DNA of 64,000 nucleotides, from NCBI GenBank assembly GCA_964188305.1, contig OZ076889.1. The stretch is one strand, 5' to 3'. This document shows, piece after piece, positions 6,266 through 63,796 of this stretch. The first letter of the stretch is position 1. Every line of letters starts with the position of its first letter. This DNA comes from Podarcis bocagei (lineage: Eukaryota). Below the pieces are notes generated by a model, which saw only the letters and a list, made by a program, of their open reading frames with translations, made no database searches and was not told the origin of the DNA. The position numbers and the translations under genes are program-made.

Positions 6266-6692
6266 CAGTGGCGTAGCGTGGGGGGTGCAGGGGGGGCCAT
6301 TCGCACTGGGCGCAACATCTGGGGGGGGGCGCTCGCACTCTCAGCTCTCTGCCCCTACCTGGCTCACTCACTCTCTCTCACTGCAGTGCTGGCTGTGCGA
6401 ATCCGATCCGAGCCGCCGGGTCGCCGCCCACTGTGGAGGGGGGGGGGTGCCAGGCGTGCGGTGCGGAGAGAGAGCGAGGGACTATCTGGGGGAGGGACAG
6501 TGCAGCGGCCGCCCAGCGCAGCGCTGAGAGCGGGAGAGAACCACACCAGACCAGCCCAGGCAGCAGCAAGAAGAAGCTGGCAGCGGTGGCAGGTTAGGGG
6601 TTAGGGGGCGCAAATTACTTGCCTTGCCCTGGGTTAGGGGGCGCAAATTACTTGCCTTGCCCCGGGTGCTGACAACCCACGCTACGCCACTG
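6266..6692. mobile_element. non-autonomous hAT element with GC-rich interior
   Basis: Perfect 17-bp TIR CAGTGGCGTAGCGTGGG; perfect 8-bp TSD GCAGTGCT (6258-6265 / 6693-6700). Confidence 0.92.
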
Positions 6693-9044
6693 GCAGTGCT
6701 CAAGGGGAGAAATCATGTTAATATCTCACATCCTCCCTCTTGAAAGGATGCATATGTCTCTATGTGCATTGAGCTGGACTTTAATCCTGAAATATAGTTT
6801 TTAGCATATTGCCAAACAGAATGCTGAATGGGGAAATTAAAGCCAAAGCCCCCTTTTAACTAAACTGGTTAATGAATTGCTGGTCGATAATAAATTTCTC
6901 AGTCTTTAAGGTGCTGTTAGACTCTTACCCCTCTCTGCTCCTCTTGTATGGATGTCAATCATTCCTGATGTATCTCTTTGCCATTGAATAAATAGCAATG
7001 TGTGATAATGATTGTGTGAAGTGTCACTAGTTCTTCTCGAGAAACCAAGGAATTTTGGTTTGTGTGGCTGAACGAAAAATTCACAGGCAATATGCATTTT
7101 AAGTCCCCATTCCACATTCCTCCAGGTTACTCTGCTGCTCTTTTTTGTCCCCCTCTGGAAATGTTCACGTTACACATGCTTGAAGGTTTCTTCTGATTTA
7201 CCAGGCACTCAGCTATTGATTCTTTTTCTTCTGCAGCAGATTCTTCATATTGATCTTTTCAGGGACAAAGTTCATTAAGGGTGCGGACGTTTCAGAGCTC
7301 TTCTGTAAAATAGTTTCATTCCCTTCCTCACTTCTAGTGCTGTTATCTCACAAAGAAAGTGATTTTTCCCCTTCTCTCTTGAATTTAGTGATAGGTCAGA
7401 AAGCACAAATCTTGTTCTTTCCACTGAAAAGTATATTTTCTATGGGATAGATTCTTAACTGGGGAATAGTTTTCTGGGTGCATTAGAAAAATGTCTACTG
7501 TGCATACATTGGACACTTTCCTCTGCAAAGAGAGAGGACAAATTAAACCCAGGATTTTGTTCTGCCGTGTGACTAGTTAAGGTATTCATATTGCAGTTGT
7601 TCTCTTCTGCTAAACCTCTCTTCTGCTGCTTTGCAGCATCCAAGTGATGTTCAAGTTAGGAAAGAAAATGTATTAATAACTAATTTAGATTCTGAAACAC
7701 TGAGAGCCACGTAGCTAGAGCACTTGATTGCATGTGAAGAGATGTGGTTGGATGTGCTCAGTTCACTTATATAAAATGTGGATCTCAGGTGGTGGAAGCC
7801 CAAAAGCAGTTGAACCAAGAGCTACACACATAAAAGTAATCCACAGAAGTGGGAAGATCTGAAATGCATGGACTATGAGAATTCATCTACTCTGAAATGT
7901 GTTTTACTTAGTCATCGGATGGGGAAACCTATGCATGTTAGCATTGGGTTTTGTGCTAAAGGTCTACTACATGTTTGGCAAACCTAATTTTTTATCACTA
8001 CTACCTCCTGCCACAACAACTCAATGGCATAGCAACCTTTGTTTTCTCCAGCAACTTTGGAGTGAAGAAACTTGAACATCTGAAAGAAGTGAGGATCGAA
8101 TGGATGATAGACAGATGGGTAGATCTTCCTCTTCAAGCCTTTGCTGCTGGCCAGGTATGATACCTGGTTTAGGACTTAGTTGATCTGACTTTTCTGCCTA
8201 CTTGGCCTTAGCCTTCGAGCAACCATTACGAAAGAAAGGAGGAGCACTTTGCTGGTATCTGAGTCAGTGGGTTTTTGTTCTGCGTTTTCCATTGTCAAGG
8301 CTTCTTGCCTTGAGTTGCTGTCCCTAATCTCATCTATCTTCTCTTGTCTTTGCTCTTCCCCTTCCTTGATCCTATTGGAGCAAAACCCCATCAAAGCATA
8401 CTTCCCTAGCACTGAGACTATGGCACTGTGCAAGATTTGACACTGAAATGTGCTGGCCCCTGACATCAGAGCTGTCCCCTTCACTGGAAAACTGAAAAGT
8501 ACAAGGATTTGTTGGGGGCTGGGATCTGGCAGCTAGCTTTTCACACATTCTTTTCTCTCACTTTTGTATCAACAGTGGGGTAGGAGAGCTGAAAATAATG
8601 CCAACATATTTCACATCTGGTAACCAATGCGCTCCTTTGGTTTCAGATAGTACGGTGATTCTAAAAAGAAGTATGCATGTCTACTCGATTATGACCAAAC
8701 TAAGCCCCCCTAGAGCAAAATATACACTAGGAGCCTTAATTTAATCTGAATTGAGTATACACTTTCCAGTGTCAATGCTAAATACATCACTTCTGGTAAA
8801 TGAACCACCATAGCCGCTAGAGGGCTGTGAAAATTTGAGTCATGGGCTTTTTAGACTCATCTATCCATGTACTATCTGAAACCAAAGGAGCACATTTCCA
8901 AATCCAAAGTTACTCAAAGGCCATAAGAACAGGCCAATACGGGAGTGTTAAGTGGAGTCACCACAGAATTAATTCATATTTTGATCAGGAATGTTGAGTC
9001 TGACCCCCTCCTCCTGTAGTCCTCATAGAACTCTAGCCCAATGG

Positions 9045-36793: not shown

Positions 36794-36967
36794 NNNNNNN
36801 NNNNNNNNNNNNNNNNNNNNNNNNNNNNNNNNNNNNNNNNNNNNNNNNNNNNNNNNNNNNNNNNNNNNNNNNNNNNNNNNNNNNNNNNNNNNNNNNNNNN
36901 NNNNNNNNNNNNNNNNNNNNNNNNNNNNNNNNNNNNNNNNNNNNNNNNNNNNNNNNNNNNNNNNNNN
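36794..36967. other. assembly gap (174 N)
   Basis: Run of N. Confidence 1.
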
Positions 36968-38729: not shown

Positions 38730-40530
38730 GTTGGAATACAACTCCCATCATTTCTGGCTGTTGGTCATACTAGGTGGGGGTGATGCAAATTGAATGTCCG
38801 ACACTAGGCTCTTTTAAACTGTCTGTGTGTGTTATTGTTTCTTATTATGCCATGTATTTTTGTGTTTTTATATTGTAAACCGCCCTGTGATCTTTGGATG
38901 AAGGGCAGTACTGAAATTTTAACAACAACAGCAGCAGCAACAGATCAGCTTCCGGTTCTGGTCTGCCTTAATAGAGGCAGCTCCCACGACAGCAGGAGAT
39001 CATTGACGAAGGAAAAACAGGGATGATTGAGGGTAATTATCCTTGCAAGATTTCCCCAAGGACAGGGATAGAACCTCTATCCAACATGAACAGAAATTAT
39101 TAATATTGCAGTTGTTGTATAAGGGATCGCTATTTTGACTGGAATGTAATAGAAATTAATAAGATTTTGGAACTCAGAAATAAATCATATAATTTGATAT
39201 TTGAATGATTGGCATTAGTAATTGTATTATAATTTGGTATTGTTATAATGAGGCTATTATTGGATTGTAATTGAAAATTAATAAAAAATATTATTAAAAA
39301 ACCCCAATAGCAACATCTGGAGGCTACCATATTCACTACCCCAGTGATTGACTAACAACTACTTTACAATCCTCTGTTTCTAGGGCTGTTTGGTCTAAGT
39401 CCATTAGCAGCTAAAGAACCATAAGAAGAAAGATCAGGGACCCTGAATTTGTCCATCAACACTCAGCACCCAGACAACAGAGAGACGAGGCACACAGTCC
39501 ACCTGGTTAGGGTCACCTCCACTATGGTGAGATGTACTGCATTTCTCTTTAAGGCATAGCAATGATTTCTTAATTTTCAACTATACATATACATCAGCAC
39601 ACACACATTGTATGCAGATATGTGCTCACTCATGCCTTCTTTTTTATGTTGGTTGCCTCTATTCTGGCGATGCATAAGTGACCACCCTAAGAAGGGTTGT
39701 AAAAACAAAGAAACCAGGGTATGGTCTAAAAGCAGATGAGGCCACCACCATGCTGAAGCTAAGCAGGTCTATGTCTGGTCAATAGCTGGATGGGTGACTT
39801 CCTGGGGACCACATGTATGACAGGAAGAAGGTGGGAATATAAATGTATGGGGGGGGAAGCAACTTAAGAGGACAAGTTCTAATATGACCCCTTGAATACA
39901 TATTGTACAATGTAAGAACCTGCAGGTAAAAACAGGGGCCAAGAATCTAACCAACTTCAAGGAGGGCTTTCAAGTAGAAGAATGTGTAAATCGCTTCCTT
40001 CTATCAGTCCATGTTGTGCTTTCATGACCGTATATTACAAATCATCACTAAAAGCATTCCCTACTGTCATTAAGACTCCATTTTTCAGAAGAAAAATCAT
40101 TTGCCTTGTCACTGTATTTTAAATGCCAGCTGGGGAAGGCCATGAGAGATTTCCAATAATCAGTATGCGAGGGAGTATGGGATTCAGTAATAAACCGAAC
40201 CACTTATCTGAACCATTTTCTCATTCAGTATATTAGGCTAGATTTTCAAAACATGTCATTTTCAAAGCATTTAGATTCCCCTCAGGTGAATGAACATACC
40301 GTATTTTTCGGACTATTGGACGCACCGGTCCATAGGACGCACCTAGATTTGGGGGGGGGGGGAAATAAAGGCAAAAAATTTTTATCCCCCCCCCGCCAGG
40401 CGCGGGGCTGGGGCGGGGAAGCCCGAGCTTCCCCCTCCCCCAGAACGGGACCCAGAGCCATGCCGAAGCTGCGCGCAGCTTTGGCATCGCTCTGGGAGCT
40501 TGCGGGGCTGGGGGAGGAGGAAGCCTTCCG

Positions 40531-41300
40531 CCAGCCTCCAAACCATGTCGGGAGACAGCGGGATGGCGCGCTGCGCCTCTCCTGCTGTCCCCCGAGTTTG
40601 CGGGGCTGGGCCAGCCTTCTAACCAAGTCGGGGGACAGCGGGAAGGGCGCGCTGCGCCCCTGCCGCTGTCTCCCGAGTTTGCGGGGCTGGCGACGGGGAG
40701 GAGCAGGCTTCTCCCCCCGCCAGCCTTCTAACCAAGTCGGGGGACAGCGGCAAAGGCGCGCTGCCCCCTGCCGCTGTCTCCCGAGTTTGCGGGGCTGGCG
40801 ACGGGAAGGAGCAGGCTTCTCCCCCCGCCAGCCTTCTAACCAAGTCGGGGGACAGCGGCAAAGGCGCGCTGCCCCCTGCCGCTGTCTCCCGAGTTTGCGG
40901 GGCTGGCAATGGGGAGGAGCAGGCTTCTCCCCCCGCCAGCCTTCTAGACAAGTCGGGGGACAGCGGGAAAGGTGCGCTGCGCCTCTCCCGCTGTCCCCCG
41001 AGTTTGCGGGGCTGGCGACGGGGAGGAGCAGGCTTCTCCCCCCGCCAGCCTTCTAGCCAAGTCGGGGGACAGCGGGAAAGGCGCGCTGCGCCTCTCCCGC
41101 TGTCTCCCGAGTTTGCGGGGCTGGCGACGGGGAGGAGCAGGCTCCCCCTCCCCCAGCCTTCTAACCAAGTCGGGGGACAGCGGGAATGGCGCGCTGCGCC
41201 TCTCCCGCTGTCTCCCGAGTTTGCGGGGCTGGTGACGGGGAGGAGCAGGCTCCCCCCCAGCCTTCTAACCAAGTCGGGGGACAGCGGGAAGGGCGCGCTG
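40531..41300. repeat. GC-rich minisatellite A (about 108-bp unit, about 7 copies)
   Basis: CAGCCTTCTAACCAAGTCGGGGGACAGCGG unit starts near 40612, 40721, 40829, 40937, 41046, 41154 and 41258. Confidence 0.95.
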
Positions 41301-41302
41301 AA

Positions 41303-42085
41303 GCCTGGAGGTTGTGGGGCTGGTGGGGGGGAGAAGCAGGATCGCCGCCATCCCGCTATTCCCCGACCTGATCTGGAGGTTGTGGGGCTGGGGGGGGGGG
41401 AGAAGCAGGCTTGCTTCTCCCACCCCCAGCCTCCAGATCAGGTCGGGGAATAGCGGGATGGCGGAGCGCTGCCATCCCGCTATTCCCCGACCTGATCTGG
41501 AGGTTGTGGGGATGGTGGGGGGGGAGAAGCAGGCTTGCTTCTCCCACCCCCAGCCTCCAGATCAGGTCGGGGAATAGCGGGATGGCGGAGCGCTGCCATC
41601 CCGCTATTCCCCGACCTGATCTGGAGGTTGTGGGGATGTGGGGGGGGAGAAGCAGGCTTGCTTCTCCCACCCCCAGCCTCCAGATCAGGTCGGGGAATAG
41701 CGGGATGGCGGCGCTTCGCCATCCCCCTATCCCCCGAACTTGTGGGGCTGGGGGGGGGGGAGAAGCAGGCTTGCTTCTCCCACCCCCAGCCTCCAGATCA
41801 GGTCGGGGAATAGGGGGATGGCGGAGCGCCGCCATCCCGCTATTCCCCGACCTGATCTGGAGGTTGTGGGGATGTGGGGGGGGGGAGAAGCAGGCTTGCT
41901 TCTCCCACCCCAGCCTCCAGATCAGGTCGGGGAATAGCGGGATGGCGGCGCTTCACCATCCCCCTATCCCCCGAGCTTGTGGGGCTGGGGGGGGGAGAAG
42001 CAGGCTTGCTTCTCCCCCCGCCAGCCTCCAGATCAGGTCGGGGAATAGCGGGGTGGCGGCTCTGCGCCTCGCCGCTGTCCCCAGC
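41303..42085. repeat. GC-rich minisatellite B (about 111-124-bp unit, about 6 copies)
   Basis: CAGCCTCCAGATCAGGTCGGGGAATAGCGGGATGGC unit starts near 41427, 41551, 41673, 41787, 41911 and 42022. Confidence 0.95.
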
Positions 42086-44649
42086 TTTTGGGTGCAGGCT
42101 GCTGCCCGCAAGCCTTGCGAGCCCGCGGGACATCCCGCCGGGCTTGCAAGACTTGGGATAGCTTCCTGAAGCCTGGAGAGCGAGAGGGGTCGGTGCGCAC
42201 GGACCCCTCTCGCTCTCCAGGCTTCAGCAAAAGCCTGCATTCGCACCATAGGACGCACACACATTTCCCCTTCATTTTTGGAGGGGAAAAAGTGCGTCCT
42301 ATAGTGCGAAAAATACGGTACTTTCTCACATCGTGAAATTGGCCCTGTGGAGGACAACTAGAACCAGTTTTGTGTCCTTTAGAAAGACAATAAACAGTCA
42401 AGTTTCACTTCAGGATCACACCAACTTACTCTCTGATCACCATCTGGGCTGCTGTAAACAGTCTCACTCCTCATCTTCCTGCTGCCTCCATCCTCCTTTT
42501 TGTGATATTGTTGAGGTCTTCCTCCTCGCTGCCCTTTCTCTCTCCTCCTGCTTCTTTTCTCCTCGTTCTGCATGAGCTGTAGCAGTATCAACAGTTTTCC
42601 CACTGGCCCACCCAACTCCTTCTCCTGCCCTAGTGTCTCCTGCTGAGGAAGAGTTAATAGGGAGTCAACATCCTTTCAGTAAACAGAATCAAACCCCAAC
42701 TGCCTTTGGTGGCATGGAGGGGAATTTGTAACTTTTGACCAGGTCCCCAGTGGGGAAAGTTTAGCTTGTGGATTTGAAGGGAAACCTGTGAAAACTGGGC
42801 CAGCGAAAATGTAGGCTGAGAAATAAATGGAAGGGGGGGGGGAATTGGAGGGTCATCCTGTTTGAAGAATCAAATACATTTCCTGTTGTCCATTGCCCCA
42901 ACCTGCCTGCCCTCCTCGCATAGATGGCCGCGGCTGTATAATTGATGCTGCGGTGTAGTCTGAAGGATTCTGTCAAGATTGGCAGGACAGATGCCACTCA
43001 GCCCTAGCTTTTGGGCCATTGCCTCATTGTCAGAAGTGACACTTTCACGAGCTCATTTATTGCATTGTTGCTCCCCTAAGTGATTGCCAATGATGGGATT
43101 TATAGGTGCGCGTTCAGGAGTGGCTAGATGAGATGGGCTTTCTCTTCTCTTCTCCATCCCTCCCCCCCCGCCACCTCCACCTTCACTCGTATTAATTCCA
43201 AAGTTACTGCCAATGAATAGTTGTATCCAGATTGATGGGCAGCGTACTATAATTACCTGTCAGAGACATGGACCACTTGATGCTGGAAGCTGGACTTTGA
43301 TGGAGGCGCTACAGGGGAGGCGAGGAGGGCGAAACTGAAATTGACAACATTGCAGCTCTGCTTGCATCTGCTTATTTCTTTGCAGATAAGCTGTTTGTGT
43401 TAACTTGAGCATTTTTTTAAATGAAAAAAACCAAAAACCCAGCACCTTACATTTTGCTATCTACAATTCCCCCACCGCCGGACTTAATTATAGGATTATA
43501 ATTGCCAATTAAGCGATAAGTCTTGTATTCCTGGGTCACTGTGCATGAATCTGATGCAATGTGCATGGGGGGGGGGGAGAGAAAGAGAATCAGACTGAAT
43601 GCACTCTCCAATATTTCTAAGTCATTCTCAGCTAATCTGGTTTTTAGTTGAGAGCCGGTGTGGTTAGATGATCTGACTAAGATGGAGGAAACCCAGCCAT
43701 TGCACTTGTTGGGTGATTTGGGGTGAATTGCCATTGTTCACAGGGTTGTTGGGAGGGTAAAATGGAATATGGAAGAACCATCTATGGTGCCTTGAGATCC
43801 TTGAAAGAAAAGTGGAATATAAAATGTGCTACATAAATAAATAAATAAATATAAGGGCTGTGCATGGAACCCTTAATCAACCTTGTATCTATACTCCCCC
43901 CCCCCCCCATCCAGTGGTAGCGTATTCTGTTTTGCCACCAGCAGAAAAGCAGAGCTGGCATCAGCACCTATTTCAGGTGAGTTTCCTGAGGTCTCAGTGC
44001 TCCACAAGATGTTGCATGATTTTGGCGAGATCTTGATGGTAATCAGCACGATCTTGTCCAAAACTGGCACCGCTGCCAGCACTGCTTCCCTGTGGGTGGT
44101 GGAGGTGGCAGGGCAGATGGGGCACCCATGGGGGGGGGCCCTCATCCCACCTAATGGCTGCACTGCCCCCCTCTCCATCTGTTAATTTCTGATCTCTTTC
44201 TTTGTTGTTCTCTCTGCTTCGATTTGTGATTTACATTTTGAGGCACTCGTCGTAAAATGAAGCTGCTTGTTGCCTATTCAATCTTACAAGGAACCCTTAA
44301 AATTACTATCATTTCCCTCCTTTTGCCAGAATCAGAAGCTTACAGGCTCAGGAGCCCCTCCAGAGTGGATTAAATCTGCCAAATTGCAGGTTCAGGGATT
44401 TATTTATTTTGGGGAGGGAGGAGAAGTAAAAGGAAGCCGCTTTCCTCCATAACCTATATTAAGGCAATACTTTTATTAAGCCGACTGAAAGTGCAAACTC
44501 CATATTAGTTTCATATTTTTAAGGGGAGGAGTGGGGGTTCTCTCTTGCTCTTCTATGCCTTAGAAATAATTAAAAAGTCTTTGCGTGTACTTAAATAAAA
44601 CAAAACATTAGCAGCTTCTCACCAGCTGCCTTAGAATTTTGGTATTTGC

Positions 44650-47517: not shown

Positions 47518-47653
47518 CAGGGTTTCCCAAACTTGAGTTTCCAACTGCTTGGGGACTACAATTCCCATCATCCCTGACCACTGGTCCTGCTAGCTAACGG
47601 TGATGGGAATTGTAGTCCAAGAACAGCTAGAGACCTAAGTCTGGAAAACCCTA
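47518..47653. mobile_element. palindromic hAT-derived MITE
   Basis: CAGGGTTTCCCAAACTT ... AAGTCTGGAAAACCCTA; internal inverted GGACTACAATTCCCATCA / TGATGGGAATTGTAGTCC; diverged 8-bp TSD TGCCATGG/TCCTATGG. Many older copies (about 470, 14390, 15110, 26240, 38510, 63520). Confidence 0.75.
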
Positions 47654-50947: not shown

Positions 50948-51405
50948 TGTTGTTGTTGTTTAGTCATTTAGTCGTGTCCGACTCTTCGTGACCCCATGGA
51001 CCAGAGCACGCCAGGCACTCCTGTCTTCCACTGCCTCCCGCAGTTTGGTCAGACTCATGTTTGTAGCTTCGAGAACACTGTCCAACCATCTCATCCTCTG
51101 TCGTCCCCGTCTCCTTGTGCCCTCCATCTTTCCCAACATCAGGGTCTTTTCCAGGGAGTCTTCTCTTCTCATGAGGTGGCCAAAGTATTGGAGCCTCAGC
51201 TTCAGGATCTGTCTTTCCAGTGAGCACTCAGGGCTGATTTCCTTAAGAATGGATGCGTTTGATCTTCTTGCAGTCCATGGGACTCTCAAGAGTCTCCTGC
51301 AGCACCATAATTCAAAAGCATCAATTCTTTGGCGATCAGCCTTCTTTATGGTCCAGCTTTCACTTCCATACATCACTACTGGGAAAACCATGGCTTTAAC
51401 TATAC
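50948..51405 (-). mobile_element. Bov-B (RTE) LINE 3' fragment
   Basis: ORF MVFPVVMYGSESWTIKKADRQRIDAFELWC.RRLLRVPWTARRSN...; 12-bp TSD GGCCTCTAAGTT. Confidence 0.95.
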
Positions 51406-60711: not shown

Positions 60712-61252
60712 ATATCTCTTTCTTCCCTAAATGGAGAGTTGAGAGGGTGTGTGTGTGTGTGCGTGTTTGTAGAAACTAGCCTTGTCAACAAAGGTAAACT
60801 TTGCCACCCACATTTGCCTCTGGCCCTGCCCACCACTGGAATGTGGCCCCCAGAATATTTCCTAGAAGCACATGTAGTCCTTAGGCTGGAAAAAAGTACC
60901 TTATGTCCTATGTTCCATTGATTCCAGTGACTCCTGTTAAAATAAATGGGGCTCAACATTGGGCTGAAACATGGCCCATATTTATAACTGGTAAATGTAA
61001 AGCAATGGCCTTTCCACTTTCTGCCTGCATTGATGAAGCCCTTGTGCCCTGTAGAAGATTCTGCAGAGTGTTTTAGACTGAACGCTTGGTCCGTGCAAAG
61101 TCTCATTGTTGTTTCCAACTGACCTGACAGTGACCTAGTACCCCTGAATGCTCTCCTGGGGCCTGCGCATTGTGATGGAGGGATAAGCTGTCATTCTGGG
61201 AAGCTTTTATGTTATTCCTGCTCTTGAAGTGTTGTTGTTTAGTCGTTTAGTC

Positions 61253-62497
61253 CAGTGTTTCCCAACCTTTTTTGGGCAAAGGCACACTTGTTTCATGAAA
61301 AAAATCTCGAGGCACACCACCATGCCAGATGGGGAAAGGTCACTTTTTACCTATGTAAAAAAATATAAAAAAATAGTAACAGCATAGAAGGTAATGGTAA
61401 GCTATAACTTGTTAAGCTTATACCTAAATCCGACACTGATTGGTCTCCCTTCCAAGGCACTCGAGGTCCCACATGAAAGCGAGCCCCCAGCAAGGCCTCG
61501 ACGGCCTGCAAGGCGCTTCCCCTTGCGAGTGGGAAACGGACGGGCGGCGGCCCGAGCACGACCTGGCGCCCTCTCAGCTCAGCGAGCACGACCTGAAAGC
61601 TCTGGCCGCCTCCCTGCACGCCCTCCCGGACCTGGAGTACGGCGGCAGCAGCGCGCCTCCTTCGACGGGCCCCGACGGCAACCACGAGCGGCCCCGTCGG
61701 CGGGCCTCGGCGGCGGACCTCCTGCAGGACAGCTCCAGCTTCGCGCCGGACTACGAGGGCTTCGAGTACCGGGGCGACCCTTACGAGGAGGTGGAGCCGC
61801 TGCGGAACCTGCCTGCCTTTGAAGCGTGCTCGCCGGCCTCGTCTGAGTCCAGCATCGACATCTGCTTCCTGAGGCCCGTCCACTTCACCAACGAGCCCGG
61901 CAGGACGGAGCGCACGCTGCAGCTGCTGCCCAAGAGCGCGGCGCCGACGCCGCAAGCCAGCGGCACCTACAAGCACGAGGTTTTCCGCAGCAAAGGCAAG
62001 CAGCTGAGCCGCTCGCTCAAGGAGTTCCCGCGCAGCAGTGGAGGCGGCGGCGGCTCCGAAGGCATCGCCAGCACCAGGCTGTACAGCACCCGCAGCAGCA
62101 GCGGCAGCCGCCTGCCGGCCCCAACGGAGAGGGGCTTCCCGGCCCACGGCGCCCCCTCCGCCGCCTCCCGGAGCTCCCAGCGGCACCACTTCCCGCCGCC
62201 GAGAGGAGCGGGCGACCAGCCCAGCTTTCTGGAAGTAAGGAGAGCAAAAGGCAAGGGCAAAGGCGCTTCCTAGCCAGGGTCTAAGCGTGCCTATGTGGGG
62301 CACGTTACAGCCCCGTGACGTCAGCGCCACGCAGGCAGCCAGGCAGGCAGACGGCGAGAGCCCCGCACTGGGCGGCCTCTCCTCGCTGCCGCCGCCCCGC
62401 CTCTCGCCGCCCGACTCGCCCGCCTCCCTCCCACGGCACAGCAGGCAACGTCTCGCGGCACACTAGTGTGCCGCGGAACACCGGTTGGGAAACACTG
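61253..62497. mobile_element. non-autonomous hAT (Charlie/Buster-type) carrying a captured exon (Pack-hAT)
   Basis: Perfect 15-bp TIR CAGTGTTTCCCAACC; perfect 8-bp TSD GTTTAGTC with central TA; 22-bp subterminal palindrome at 62454-62475; no transposase motifs. Confidence 0.93.
61457..62234 (+). CDS. captured 778-bp host-like coding exon (about 259 codons, Ser/Pro/Gly-rich, probably disordered); parent gene not recognised
   Basis: Stop-free frame with strong GC3 bias; acceptor CTGAT-TGGTCTCCCTTCCAAG|G and donor GAA|GTAAGG; phase 2 in, phase 0 out. Confidence 0.75.
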
Positions 62498-63796
62498 GTT
62501 TAGTCATGTCCGACTCTTCGTGACCCCCTGGACCAGAGCACGCCAGGCACTCCTGTCTTCCACTGCCTCCCGCAGTTTGGTCAAACTCATGCTGGTAGCT
62601 TCGAGAACACAGTCCAACCATCTCATCCTCTGTCGTCCCCTTCTCCTTGTGCCCTCCATCTTTCCCAACATCAGGGTCTTTTCCAGGGAGTCTTCTCTTC
62701 TCATGAAGTGGCCAAAGTACTGGAGCCTCAGCTTCAGGATCTGTCCTTCCAGTGAGCACTCAGGGCTGATTTCCTTAAGAATAGAGAGGTTTGATCTTCT
62801 TGCAGTCCATGGGACTCTCAAGAGTCTCCTCCAGCACCATAATTCAAAAGCATAAATTCTTTGGCGATCAGCCTTCTTTATGGTCCAGGTCTCACTTTAA
62901 TACATCACTACTGGGAAAACCATAACTTTAACTATACGGACCTTTGTTGGCAAGGTGATGTCTTGAGGTATCCATGATAGTATAAATACAGGGTCAGTCC
63001 TACCGTTAGACTGAATGAGGGAGGTGGCTCAGGCAGCTGGTGTTAGGGGGGTGGCAGAAGTCCTCCCACATAAGCTGAGTTCCCTAAGCTCACTTGCTCT
63101 GAACCTTCTAAGGTAATGTCCGCAGGCACGGCAGAGAATTTTGTCCTGTTTCTAACATTGAAGTAGGATTCAGCTGCCAGTCTGGTTGGATTCTATGTGT
63201 GGAACAGGGAGGGCGCCATTTTGCCTTTCACCTCAGGCACCAAAATGTCTTGGTCCAGCTCCATATTGACATGTAAAACCAAAACCCCAAAACCATCAAC
63301 ATTGTTTCTGATATAATGAATTGGCCTTGCTTTGCGCCAGCTATTTTCCATGCCTCTTTCCAGGCTTCCTCTTCTGTGCTGCCTTGGGCTCTGGCTGCTC
63401 CTATAACTGTGCTGGCAAGCCCCGATAAGTGATAAACTACCCTGCAACAATCTGGATTTATTGAAAGAAGATTCCTGTGGCCTGCATTGTTCCACTTAGT
63501 GCCAGAATGAATAAGTTGCTATTGGACTCCGCCTCCTGTCAGCTGTAGCCAGCATGGTGAATGGCTAGGAATGAAGGGAGCCATAGTTCAATACCATTTG
63601 GAGGGCTGCACCTTCAGCACCTTCATTCACATAACCGCCTGTCTCCACCTCAACAGGTGCTCATGGCTGTGTGTGCAGACCATGCCATCCAGGGCAGGTA
63701 ATGGAGCCAGGAGCCTGTTCACTAAAGCTCATGTTACTTGATGAAACCCAGCTGGGCCATTGGGAAGTATGTGTAGCCCTACCATTAGCTGGTACA

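Follow-up and report, generated by a model that had tools for sequence, protein, structure and literature searches.

Tan et al. (2021, Nat Commun, PMC8277862) catalogued 370 animal Pack-TIRs, 208 of them hAT elements, with only 4 of the 370 being multicopy, and most were single-copy and made without transposition. Among the described elements, Pack-hAT-N8_XT of Xenopus tropicalis carries a piece of the CAPSL 5'UTR (PMC8277862). The one lizard genome surveyed there, anoCar2, yielded none, its TIR elements being barely annotated (PMC8277862). Uptake of filler DNA has been described for Hobo-type hATs of Anolis (PMC3014272). The preliminary description of the locus presented here had held gene capture by TIR elements to be much less documented in vertebrates than in plants, a view that the catalogue of Tan et al. 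corrects (PMC8277862). Pack-hATs are already documented in vertebrates, and the present element adds a new and unusually well-resolved case in a lizard family without reported ones.

The element occupies positions 61253-62497 (1,245 bp) of the window, the whole 64-kb stretch of Podarcis bocagei DNA that was analyzed (Table 1). Like the animal Pack-TIRs, it has hAT arms on both sides, host DNA with an identifiable parent, internal breakpoints with putative microhomology and captured introns. Its arms match a cargo-free member of the family (98% and 91%) and the parental locus is present in three lacertid genomes, two of the features by which Tan et al. (2021) recognized Pack-TIRs. Its cargo is GC-rich, as in their multicopy Pack-TIRs (PMC8277862). 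In contrast to animal Pack-TIRs, the cargo is 890 bp long against a median of 224 bp and includes an entire coding exon together with its two splice sites, and the host is a lacertid. The Pack-MULEs of rice and plant Pack-TYPE elements (PMC5861414, PMC8903248) are likewise non-autonomous TIR elements with cellular exon or intron fragments and GC-rich cargo, but Pack-MULEs are Mutator elements with 9-bp TSDs and long TIRs that number thousands in plants and often carry several genes, whereas here a single fragment sits in a hAT backbone. Helitron capture in bats and Xenopus (PMC4224331, PMC12001565) resembles this case in that a vertebrate DNA transposon duplicates host exons at the DNA level, although Helitrons are rolling-circle elements that lack TIRs and a TSD and capture by read-through rather than internal replacement.

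The TIR is near-identical to that of hAT-N3_AC (CAGTGGTTCCCAACCT, one base off) and close to that of SPIN (CAGYGGTTCTCAACCT; Novick et al. 2010, PMC3014272), and it equals that of the insect hAT2_NA MITEs, C(G/A)GTGTTTCCCAAC (PMC3845634), the likeness in each case being one of the ~15-bp terminus. hAT-N3_AC, SPIN and hAT2_NA all have 8-bp TSDs, with a central TA in the Anolis families. Unlike the Pack-hAT, lizard SPIN/hAT-N3_AC and hAT2_NA are plain MITEs without host exons.

Table 1. Features of the Pack-hAT element and its insertion site, in positions of the window.
Feature	Position	Strand	Content	Basis
Left TSD	61245-61252	.	GTTTAGTC	Identical to 62498-62505; intact tails in the window have one unit fewer
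Left TIR	61253-61267	+	CAGTGTTTCCCAACC	Perfect reverse complement of 62483-62497
Left hAT arm	61253-61397	+	145 bp, AT-rich; subterminal GGCACAC at 61281 and 61311	98% to left arm of the cargo-free element in L017 (P. muralis)
Captured upstream intron	61398-61456	+	59 bp; pyrimidine tract and AG acceptor	P. raffonei/P. muralis homology from 61398
Captured ARHGEF33 exon	61457-62234	+	778 nt; phase 2 in, phase 0 out	Homology; 259 whole codons from 61458
Captured downstream intron	62235-62287	+	53 bp; donor GTAAGG first	Homology to three native loci stops at 62286/62287
Right hAT arm	62288-62497	+	210 bp, GC- and CpG-rich	91% to right arm of the cargo-free element in L017
Right TIR	62483-62497	-		Exact reverse complement of left TIR
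Right TSD	62498-62505	.	GTTTAGTC	Same letters as 61245-61252
Interrupted host repeat, Bov-B-type tail	62498-62590 (mapped); first 24 bp at 61229-61252	-		Aligns to tails at 50976 and 33710

Both 15-bp TIRs and the 8-bp TSD are perfect, as first reported. When the element is removed, its flanks rejoin into the intact tail of a minus-strand repeat, which we take to be of Bov-B type from its GTCCGACTCTTCGTGACC motif. Tails of this repeat at 50976 and 33710 read ...TTGTTTAGTC-xTTTAGTC-xTGTCCGACTC, with two xTTTAGTC units against three at the insertion locus. The third unit is the TSD, and the two tails therefore serve as a paralogous empty site within the window; the preliminary description had suggested looking for an empty site in relatives or other haplotypes. 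Perfect 12-mer inverted repeats at most 5 kb apart and abutting a perfect 8-bp direct repeat occur in only three places in the whole window, namely at the Pack-hAT element, at a TIR element at 6266-6692 and, as an artifact, in a palindromic minisatellite, while 20 Markov-simulated windows scanned as a control gave none.

The element at 6266-6692 is GC-rich and 427 bp long; its TIRs measure 17 bp (CAGTGGCGTAGCGTGGG), its 8-bp TSD is perfect (GCAGTGCT), and related sequence is present at the P. raffonei ARHGEF33 locus (L016 ~7809-7972). A palindromic MITE with ends CAGGGTTTCCCAAAC, belonging to a different hAT-like family, lies at 47518-47650, and positions 36794-36967 consist of 174 N, either a gap or a mask. 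Positions 40200-42300 hold a GC-rich (0.66-0.71) tandem and palindromic array of ~110-125-bp units; its long ORFs, in several frames on both strands, were rejected as genes, being GC-rich minisatellite artifacts. None of ten long ORFs searched for a host gene around the insertion had a Pfam match.

The captured piece spans 890 bp (61398-62287) with boundaries that agree across the native lacertid loci, blastn homology to Lacerta agilis running from 61415 to 62286. Intron is retained on both sides of the exon, indicating that the piece was copied from genomic DNA and not from mRNA. The backbone is recognizable from a cargo-free 848-bp element in an intron of P. muralis ARHGEF33 (L017 10016-10863, minus strand, TSD CTGTAGAC), which matches the window arms right up to 61397 and 62288 and has its central ~477 bp swapped for the cargo in the window copy. 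The preliminary proposal of an exon carried instead of a transposase is therefore right about the exon but not about what it displaced, which was the ~477-bp non-coding interior of an 848-bp element that was already non-autonomous. The right arm includes TGACGTCA at 62316-62323 and a GGCACAC/GTGTGCC palindrome at 62454-62475, and its last 46-47 bp match elements in metagenome contigs L007, L010, L011 and L013 at 87-89%. GGCACAC/GTGTGCC motifs occur 14 times in the window, four of them within ~65 bp of the element termini.

Both junctions can be read to the base. On the left, hAT sequence ...AATGG-TTAGGCTA and gene sequence ...GGGGCC-TAAGCTA are joined in the window as ...AATGG-TAAGCTA, with 1 bp in common and a 6-of-7 near-match (TAGGCTA/TAAGCTA). 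On the right, gene sequence ...AAGCG-ACGG and hAT sequence ...CGCGTG-TGCC (CGCGTGTGCC) give ...AAGCG-TGCC, where the microhomology is 0-3 bp (GCG), ambiguous owing to a TG repeat. Such short or imperfect microhomologies are what template switching would be expected to leave behind.

Two other divisions of the element were rejected. Positions 62288-62450 are neither more intron nor a second captured promoter, since they match the right arm of the cargo-free family member, and 61268-61440, all backbone by composition, end in 43 bp of ARHGEF33 intron. Relative to the native exon that was the source of the cargo, the 848-bp copy of L017 is oppositely oriented and located ~7.1 kb upstream; the right half of this copy resembles a CpG-island promoter (GCGCATGCGC, TGACGTCA) and may represent an older capture.

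The frame at 61458-62234 is free of stops for 259 codons, with GC1/2/3 of 0.66/0.58/0.89 and a CpG o/e of 0.92 compared with 0.34 for the window. An ATG ORF of 266 codons (61473-62273) closes at a TAG (62271-62273) inside the captured downstream intron. The antisense frame of the cargo is also open, for 327 aa, so that openness alone is weak proof of coding, and codon periodicity and homology carry the case. A Pfam search of the peptide found no BED, DDE, hATC or other domain, and nothing useful came from searching Pfam and PDB with the peptide and with the antisense ORF. A library-wide HMMER search matched ARHGEF33 (Rho guanine-nucleotide exchange factor 33) from sturgeon to birds, in the region C-terminal to the DH domain, and no transposon protein was among the peptide matches in the protein searches. 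The open frame is real coding sequence, the large C-terminal exon of the Rho-GEF ARHGEF33. The preliminary description had anticipated a host coding exon in a stop-free, GC3- and CpG-rich frame devoid of BED, DDE and hATC motifs, and these points all hold.

Searches by region with full-length proteins, from which the named squamates come, gave protein identities of 96% to P. raffonei, ~96% to P. lilfordi and 94% to P. muralis (aa ~508-767 of 812), 93% to L. agilis, 92% to Zootoca and 62-67% to other squamates. At the nucleotide level the exon is 96.0, 94.2 and 93.3% identical to the native ARHGEF33 loci of P. raffonei (L016), P. muralis (L017) and L. agilis (L018), respectively, and a tree placed the cargo inside the lepidosaur clade. 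A long-branch cargo, hinted at by proteins of 142-453 aa (maximum 66% identity), was rejected with the full-length squamate proteins. Compared with non-lacertid squamate exons, the cargo has a dN/dS of ~0.06-0.11 and eight indels, all in frame, which indicates that the divergence arose in a working gene. Changes in the cargo avoid the sauropsid-invariant columns (10% vs 40%, p ~8e-7). The native Podarcis exons are equally extreme in composition (GC3 0.91-0.92, CpG o/e ~0.95), so the cargo inherited its odd composition from the parent, which points to a lacertid, most likely a Podarcis, as host. In native lacertids this exon (L016 16309-17088; L017 18049-18816) forms an exon-confined GC3/CpG island between 2-kb flanks with a GC of 0.42-0.48; the exon of other squamates has a GC3 of 0.56-0.63 and a CpG o/e of 0.3-0.4.

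The 8-bp TSD and the short TIRs, which start with CAG and are accompanied by repeated subterminal motifs, are those of Buster/Charlie-type hATs. The TSD consensus of the Buster group is nnnTAnnn (PMC3517528), and the central TA pointed out in the first account is found in all four lacertid copies, which have four different TSDs, and in 4 of 7 distinct flank sequences of metagenome loci. The left terminus recurs in cargo-free copies of P. muralis and L. agilis and in metagenome contigs, and the TSDs of these relatives of the window element are CTGTAGAC, GGTTAAAC, CACTAAAG and GGTCAGAG, two of them (GGTTAAAC and CACTAAAG ) belonging to short MITE relatives at the L. agilis locus. A family with shared termini and differing target sites thus exists in P. 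muralis and L. agilis in cargo-free form. P. raffonei and L. agilis lack the 848-bp P. muralis copy at their orthologous sites, where the flanks meet over a single CTGTAGAC. Relative to these two species the copy is specific to the P. muralis lineage, and the empty sites indicate that the family transposed after those species split. The hAT-N family has therefore been recently mobile, within the Podarcis radiation. In all probability short of certainty we are dealing with a MITE-like non-autonomous hAT family of Buster/Charlie type that is abundant in lacertid lizards.

Beyond lizards, the exact left-end pattern had no match in metagenome and viral contigs, and a looser right-end pattern found relatives in JGI metagenome contigs, including one complete 743-bp copy with its own TSD. 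These contigs (L006-L013; e.g., Ga0081606_1025293, L013 476-1218) are eukaryotic DNA, and their elements share the hAT terminus and carry GGCACAC repeats next to it. The terminus shared by the metagenome elements and insect hAT2_NA MITEs hints at a horizontally spread hAT lineage. As to an autonomous partner, there was no transposase ORF in the window element and there were no long ORFs beside the metagenome copies examined.

A second version of the chimera was found in two Logan contigs, L014 (ERR14042001) and L015 (ERR14042333). Both are short and lack the TIR, TSD and flank, but they contain the chimeric right junction, ...TCTAAGCG followed directly by TGCCTATG..., and are therefore copies of the chimera and not of the native gene. 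With differences polarized by the three native exons (L016, L017 and L018), 13 sites differ between the window copy and the contigs. Eleven are derived in the window copy, nine of these being CpG to TpG/CpA changes; on the contig side, one derived site is common to L014 and L015 and a further one occurs in L015 only. The window copy has lost ~8% of its CpGs and shows ~0.2% non-CpG change, for ~1.2% private change overall. By this count it is young, in keeping with the perfect TIRs and TSD and with the age given in the preliminary description, its private change being mostly CpG decay. Non-synonymous changes make up four of these nine CpG changes where 59% would be expected (p=0.29, low power), which is consistent with neutral decay. 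Since insertion, the window copy has probably been methylated junk that is losing its CpGs.

The version in L014 and L015 suggests, from sequence comparison, more than one copy of the chimera. An 11-to-1 split is difficult to reconcile with the two sides of a single orthologous locus, and it fits either paralogous copies or a contig collapsing several copies to a consensus; L014 and L015 could also be an orthologous or allelic copy with protected CpGs. L015 stops one base short of the equivalent of 62303, the position of a G/A difference between the window copy and L014, and this end may be an assembly bubble from two versions of the chimera in one sample.

We think it probable that the locus is a Pack-hAT in the full sense, a non-autonomous hAT whose middle was replaced by the ARHGEF33 exon via a template switch and which then transposed into the Bov-B-type tail. 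A break or excision gap would have arisen in a cargo-free family member and been repaired by DNA synthesis, the template switching to the ARHGEF33 exon and back by microhomology-guided gap filling or fork switching. A hAT transposase acting in trans would then have excised the chimera at its intact ends and pasted it into GTTTAGTC of the tail, producing the 8-bp duplication, after which the inserted copy would have decayed as methylated DNA with loss of CpGs. We infer template switching as the joining mechanism, and the chimera itself likely transposed rather than being filled at its present site.

The main alternative is that a cargo-free hAT-N was already in the Bov-B tail and that a later break was repaired there by copying the distant ARHGEF33 exon, in which case no exon was moved by a transposase. 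Most single-copy animal Pack-TIRs arose by filling in place (PMC8277862), the internal breakpoints with putative microhomology fit it equally well, and only one copy is present within the 64-kb window. We nevertheless consider it unlikely in this instance, as the gap-filling model has a cis bias and the 61 kb upstream and 1.5 kb downstream of the element are free of ARHGEF33 sequence, the junction version in L014 and L015 lacks the 11 changes private to the window copy, and the family was demonstrably mobile in the recent past, although no single one of these points is decisive. The preliminary statement that a non-autonomous family has moved an exon as cargo thus stands for the mobility of the family and the presence of the exon inside the element, and the chimera's own move is likely only, with filling in place as its rival.

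It is very improbable that the capture took place in a different lineage and that horizontal transfer or introgression brought in the element with its cargo. hAT ends of like type do occur in unrelated metagenome contigs, the TIR is also found in insect MITEs, and the sampled native genes reach at most 98.2% identity to the ancestral-like version. However, the cargo falls within Podarcis-level diversity, being 97.5-98.2% identical to native P. raffonei and P. muralis (themselves 98.05% identical to each other), and shows the peculiar lacertid GC3 and CpG state, so that the gene of an unsampled Podarcis host is the simplest account. Least credible of all, and excluded here, is a native ARHGEF33 exon flanked by chance inverted repeats, or a processed retrocopy, for despite the intact frame and the splice signals, tblastn with full-length frog, salamander, coelacanth and sturgeon proteins matches only the captured exon in the window, where the conserved and easily detected DH-domain exons are absent, the element flanks rejoin into an intact repeat tail, native loci carry the exon without TIRs, and a retrocopy is at odds with the 59 + 53 bp of intron kept and with the lack of poly(A). 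A native exon, the outcome that the first account had named as fatal to its reading, is thus contradicted both by the lack of a further ARHGEF33 exon in the window and by the TIR-free native loci.

The captured cassette retains both splice sites. Its 778 nt leave a remainder of 1 when divided by three, with phases 2 and 0, so that inclusion in a host intron shifts the frame and the cassette makes a poor module for in-frame shuffling. The exon-shuffling vehicle suggested in the preliminary description does not hold up in this form, as there is no simple in-frame cassette. The general picture of transposons is unchanged by the Pack-hAT, whose exon length limits its value for in-frame shuffling. 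As a natural case of a vertebrate cut-and-paste transposon capturing an exon at the DNA level, the element is unusually complete, with parent gene, cargo-free backbone and base-level junctions all in hand. Wall lizards have many assemblies and population data, which make the question of origin, template switching and transposition versus filling in place, directly testable.

The find would be notable mainly if the chimera proves multicopy. We offer only tentatively the reading that the chimera is a multicopy Pack-hAT, mobile to this day in Podarcis and spreading an intact, splice-competent exon cassette beside a CpG-rich, promoter-like hAT arm. If so, host transcripts could take up copies as exons and either terminate out of frame or gain a disordered tail, and antisense or small RNAs against the parent ARHGEF33 would be possible.
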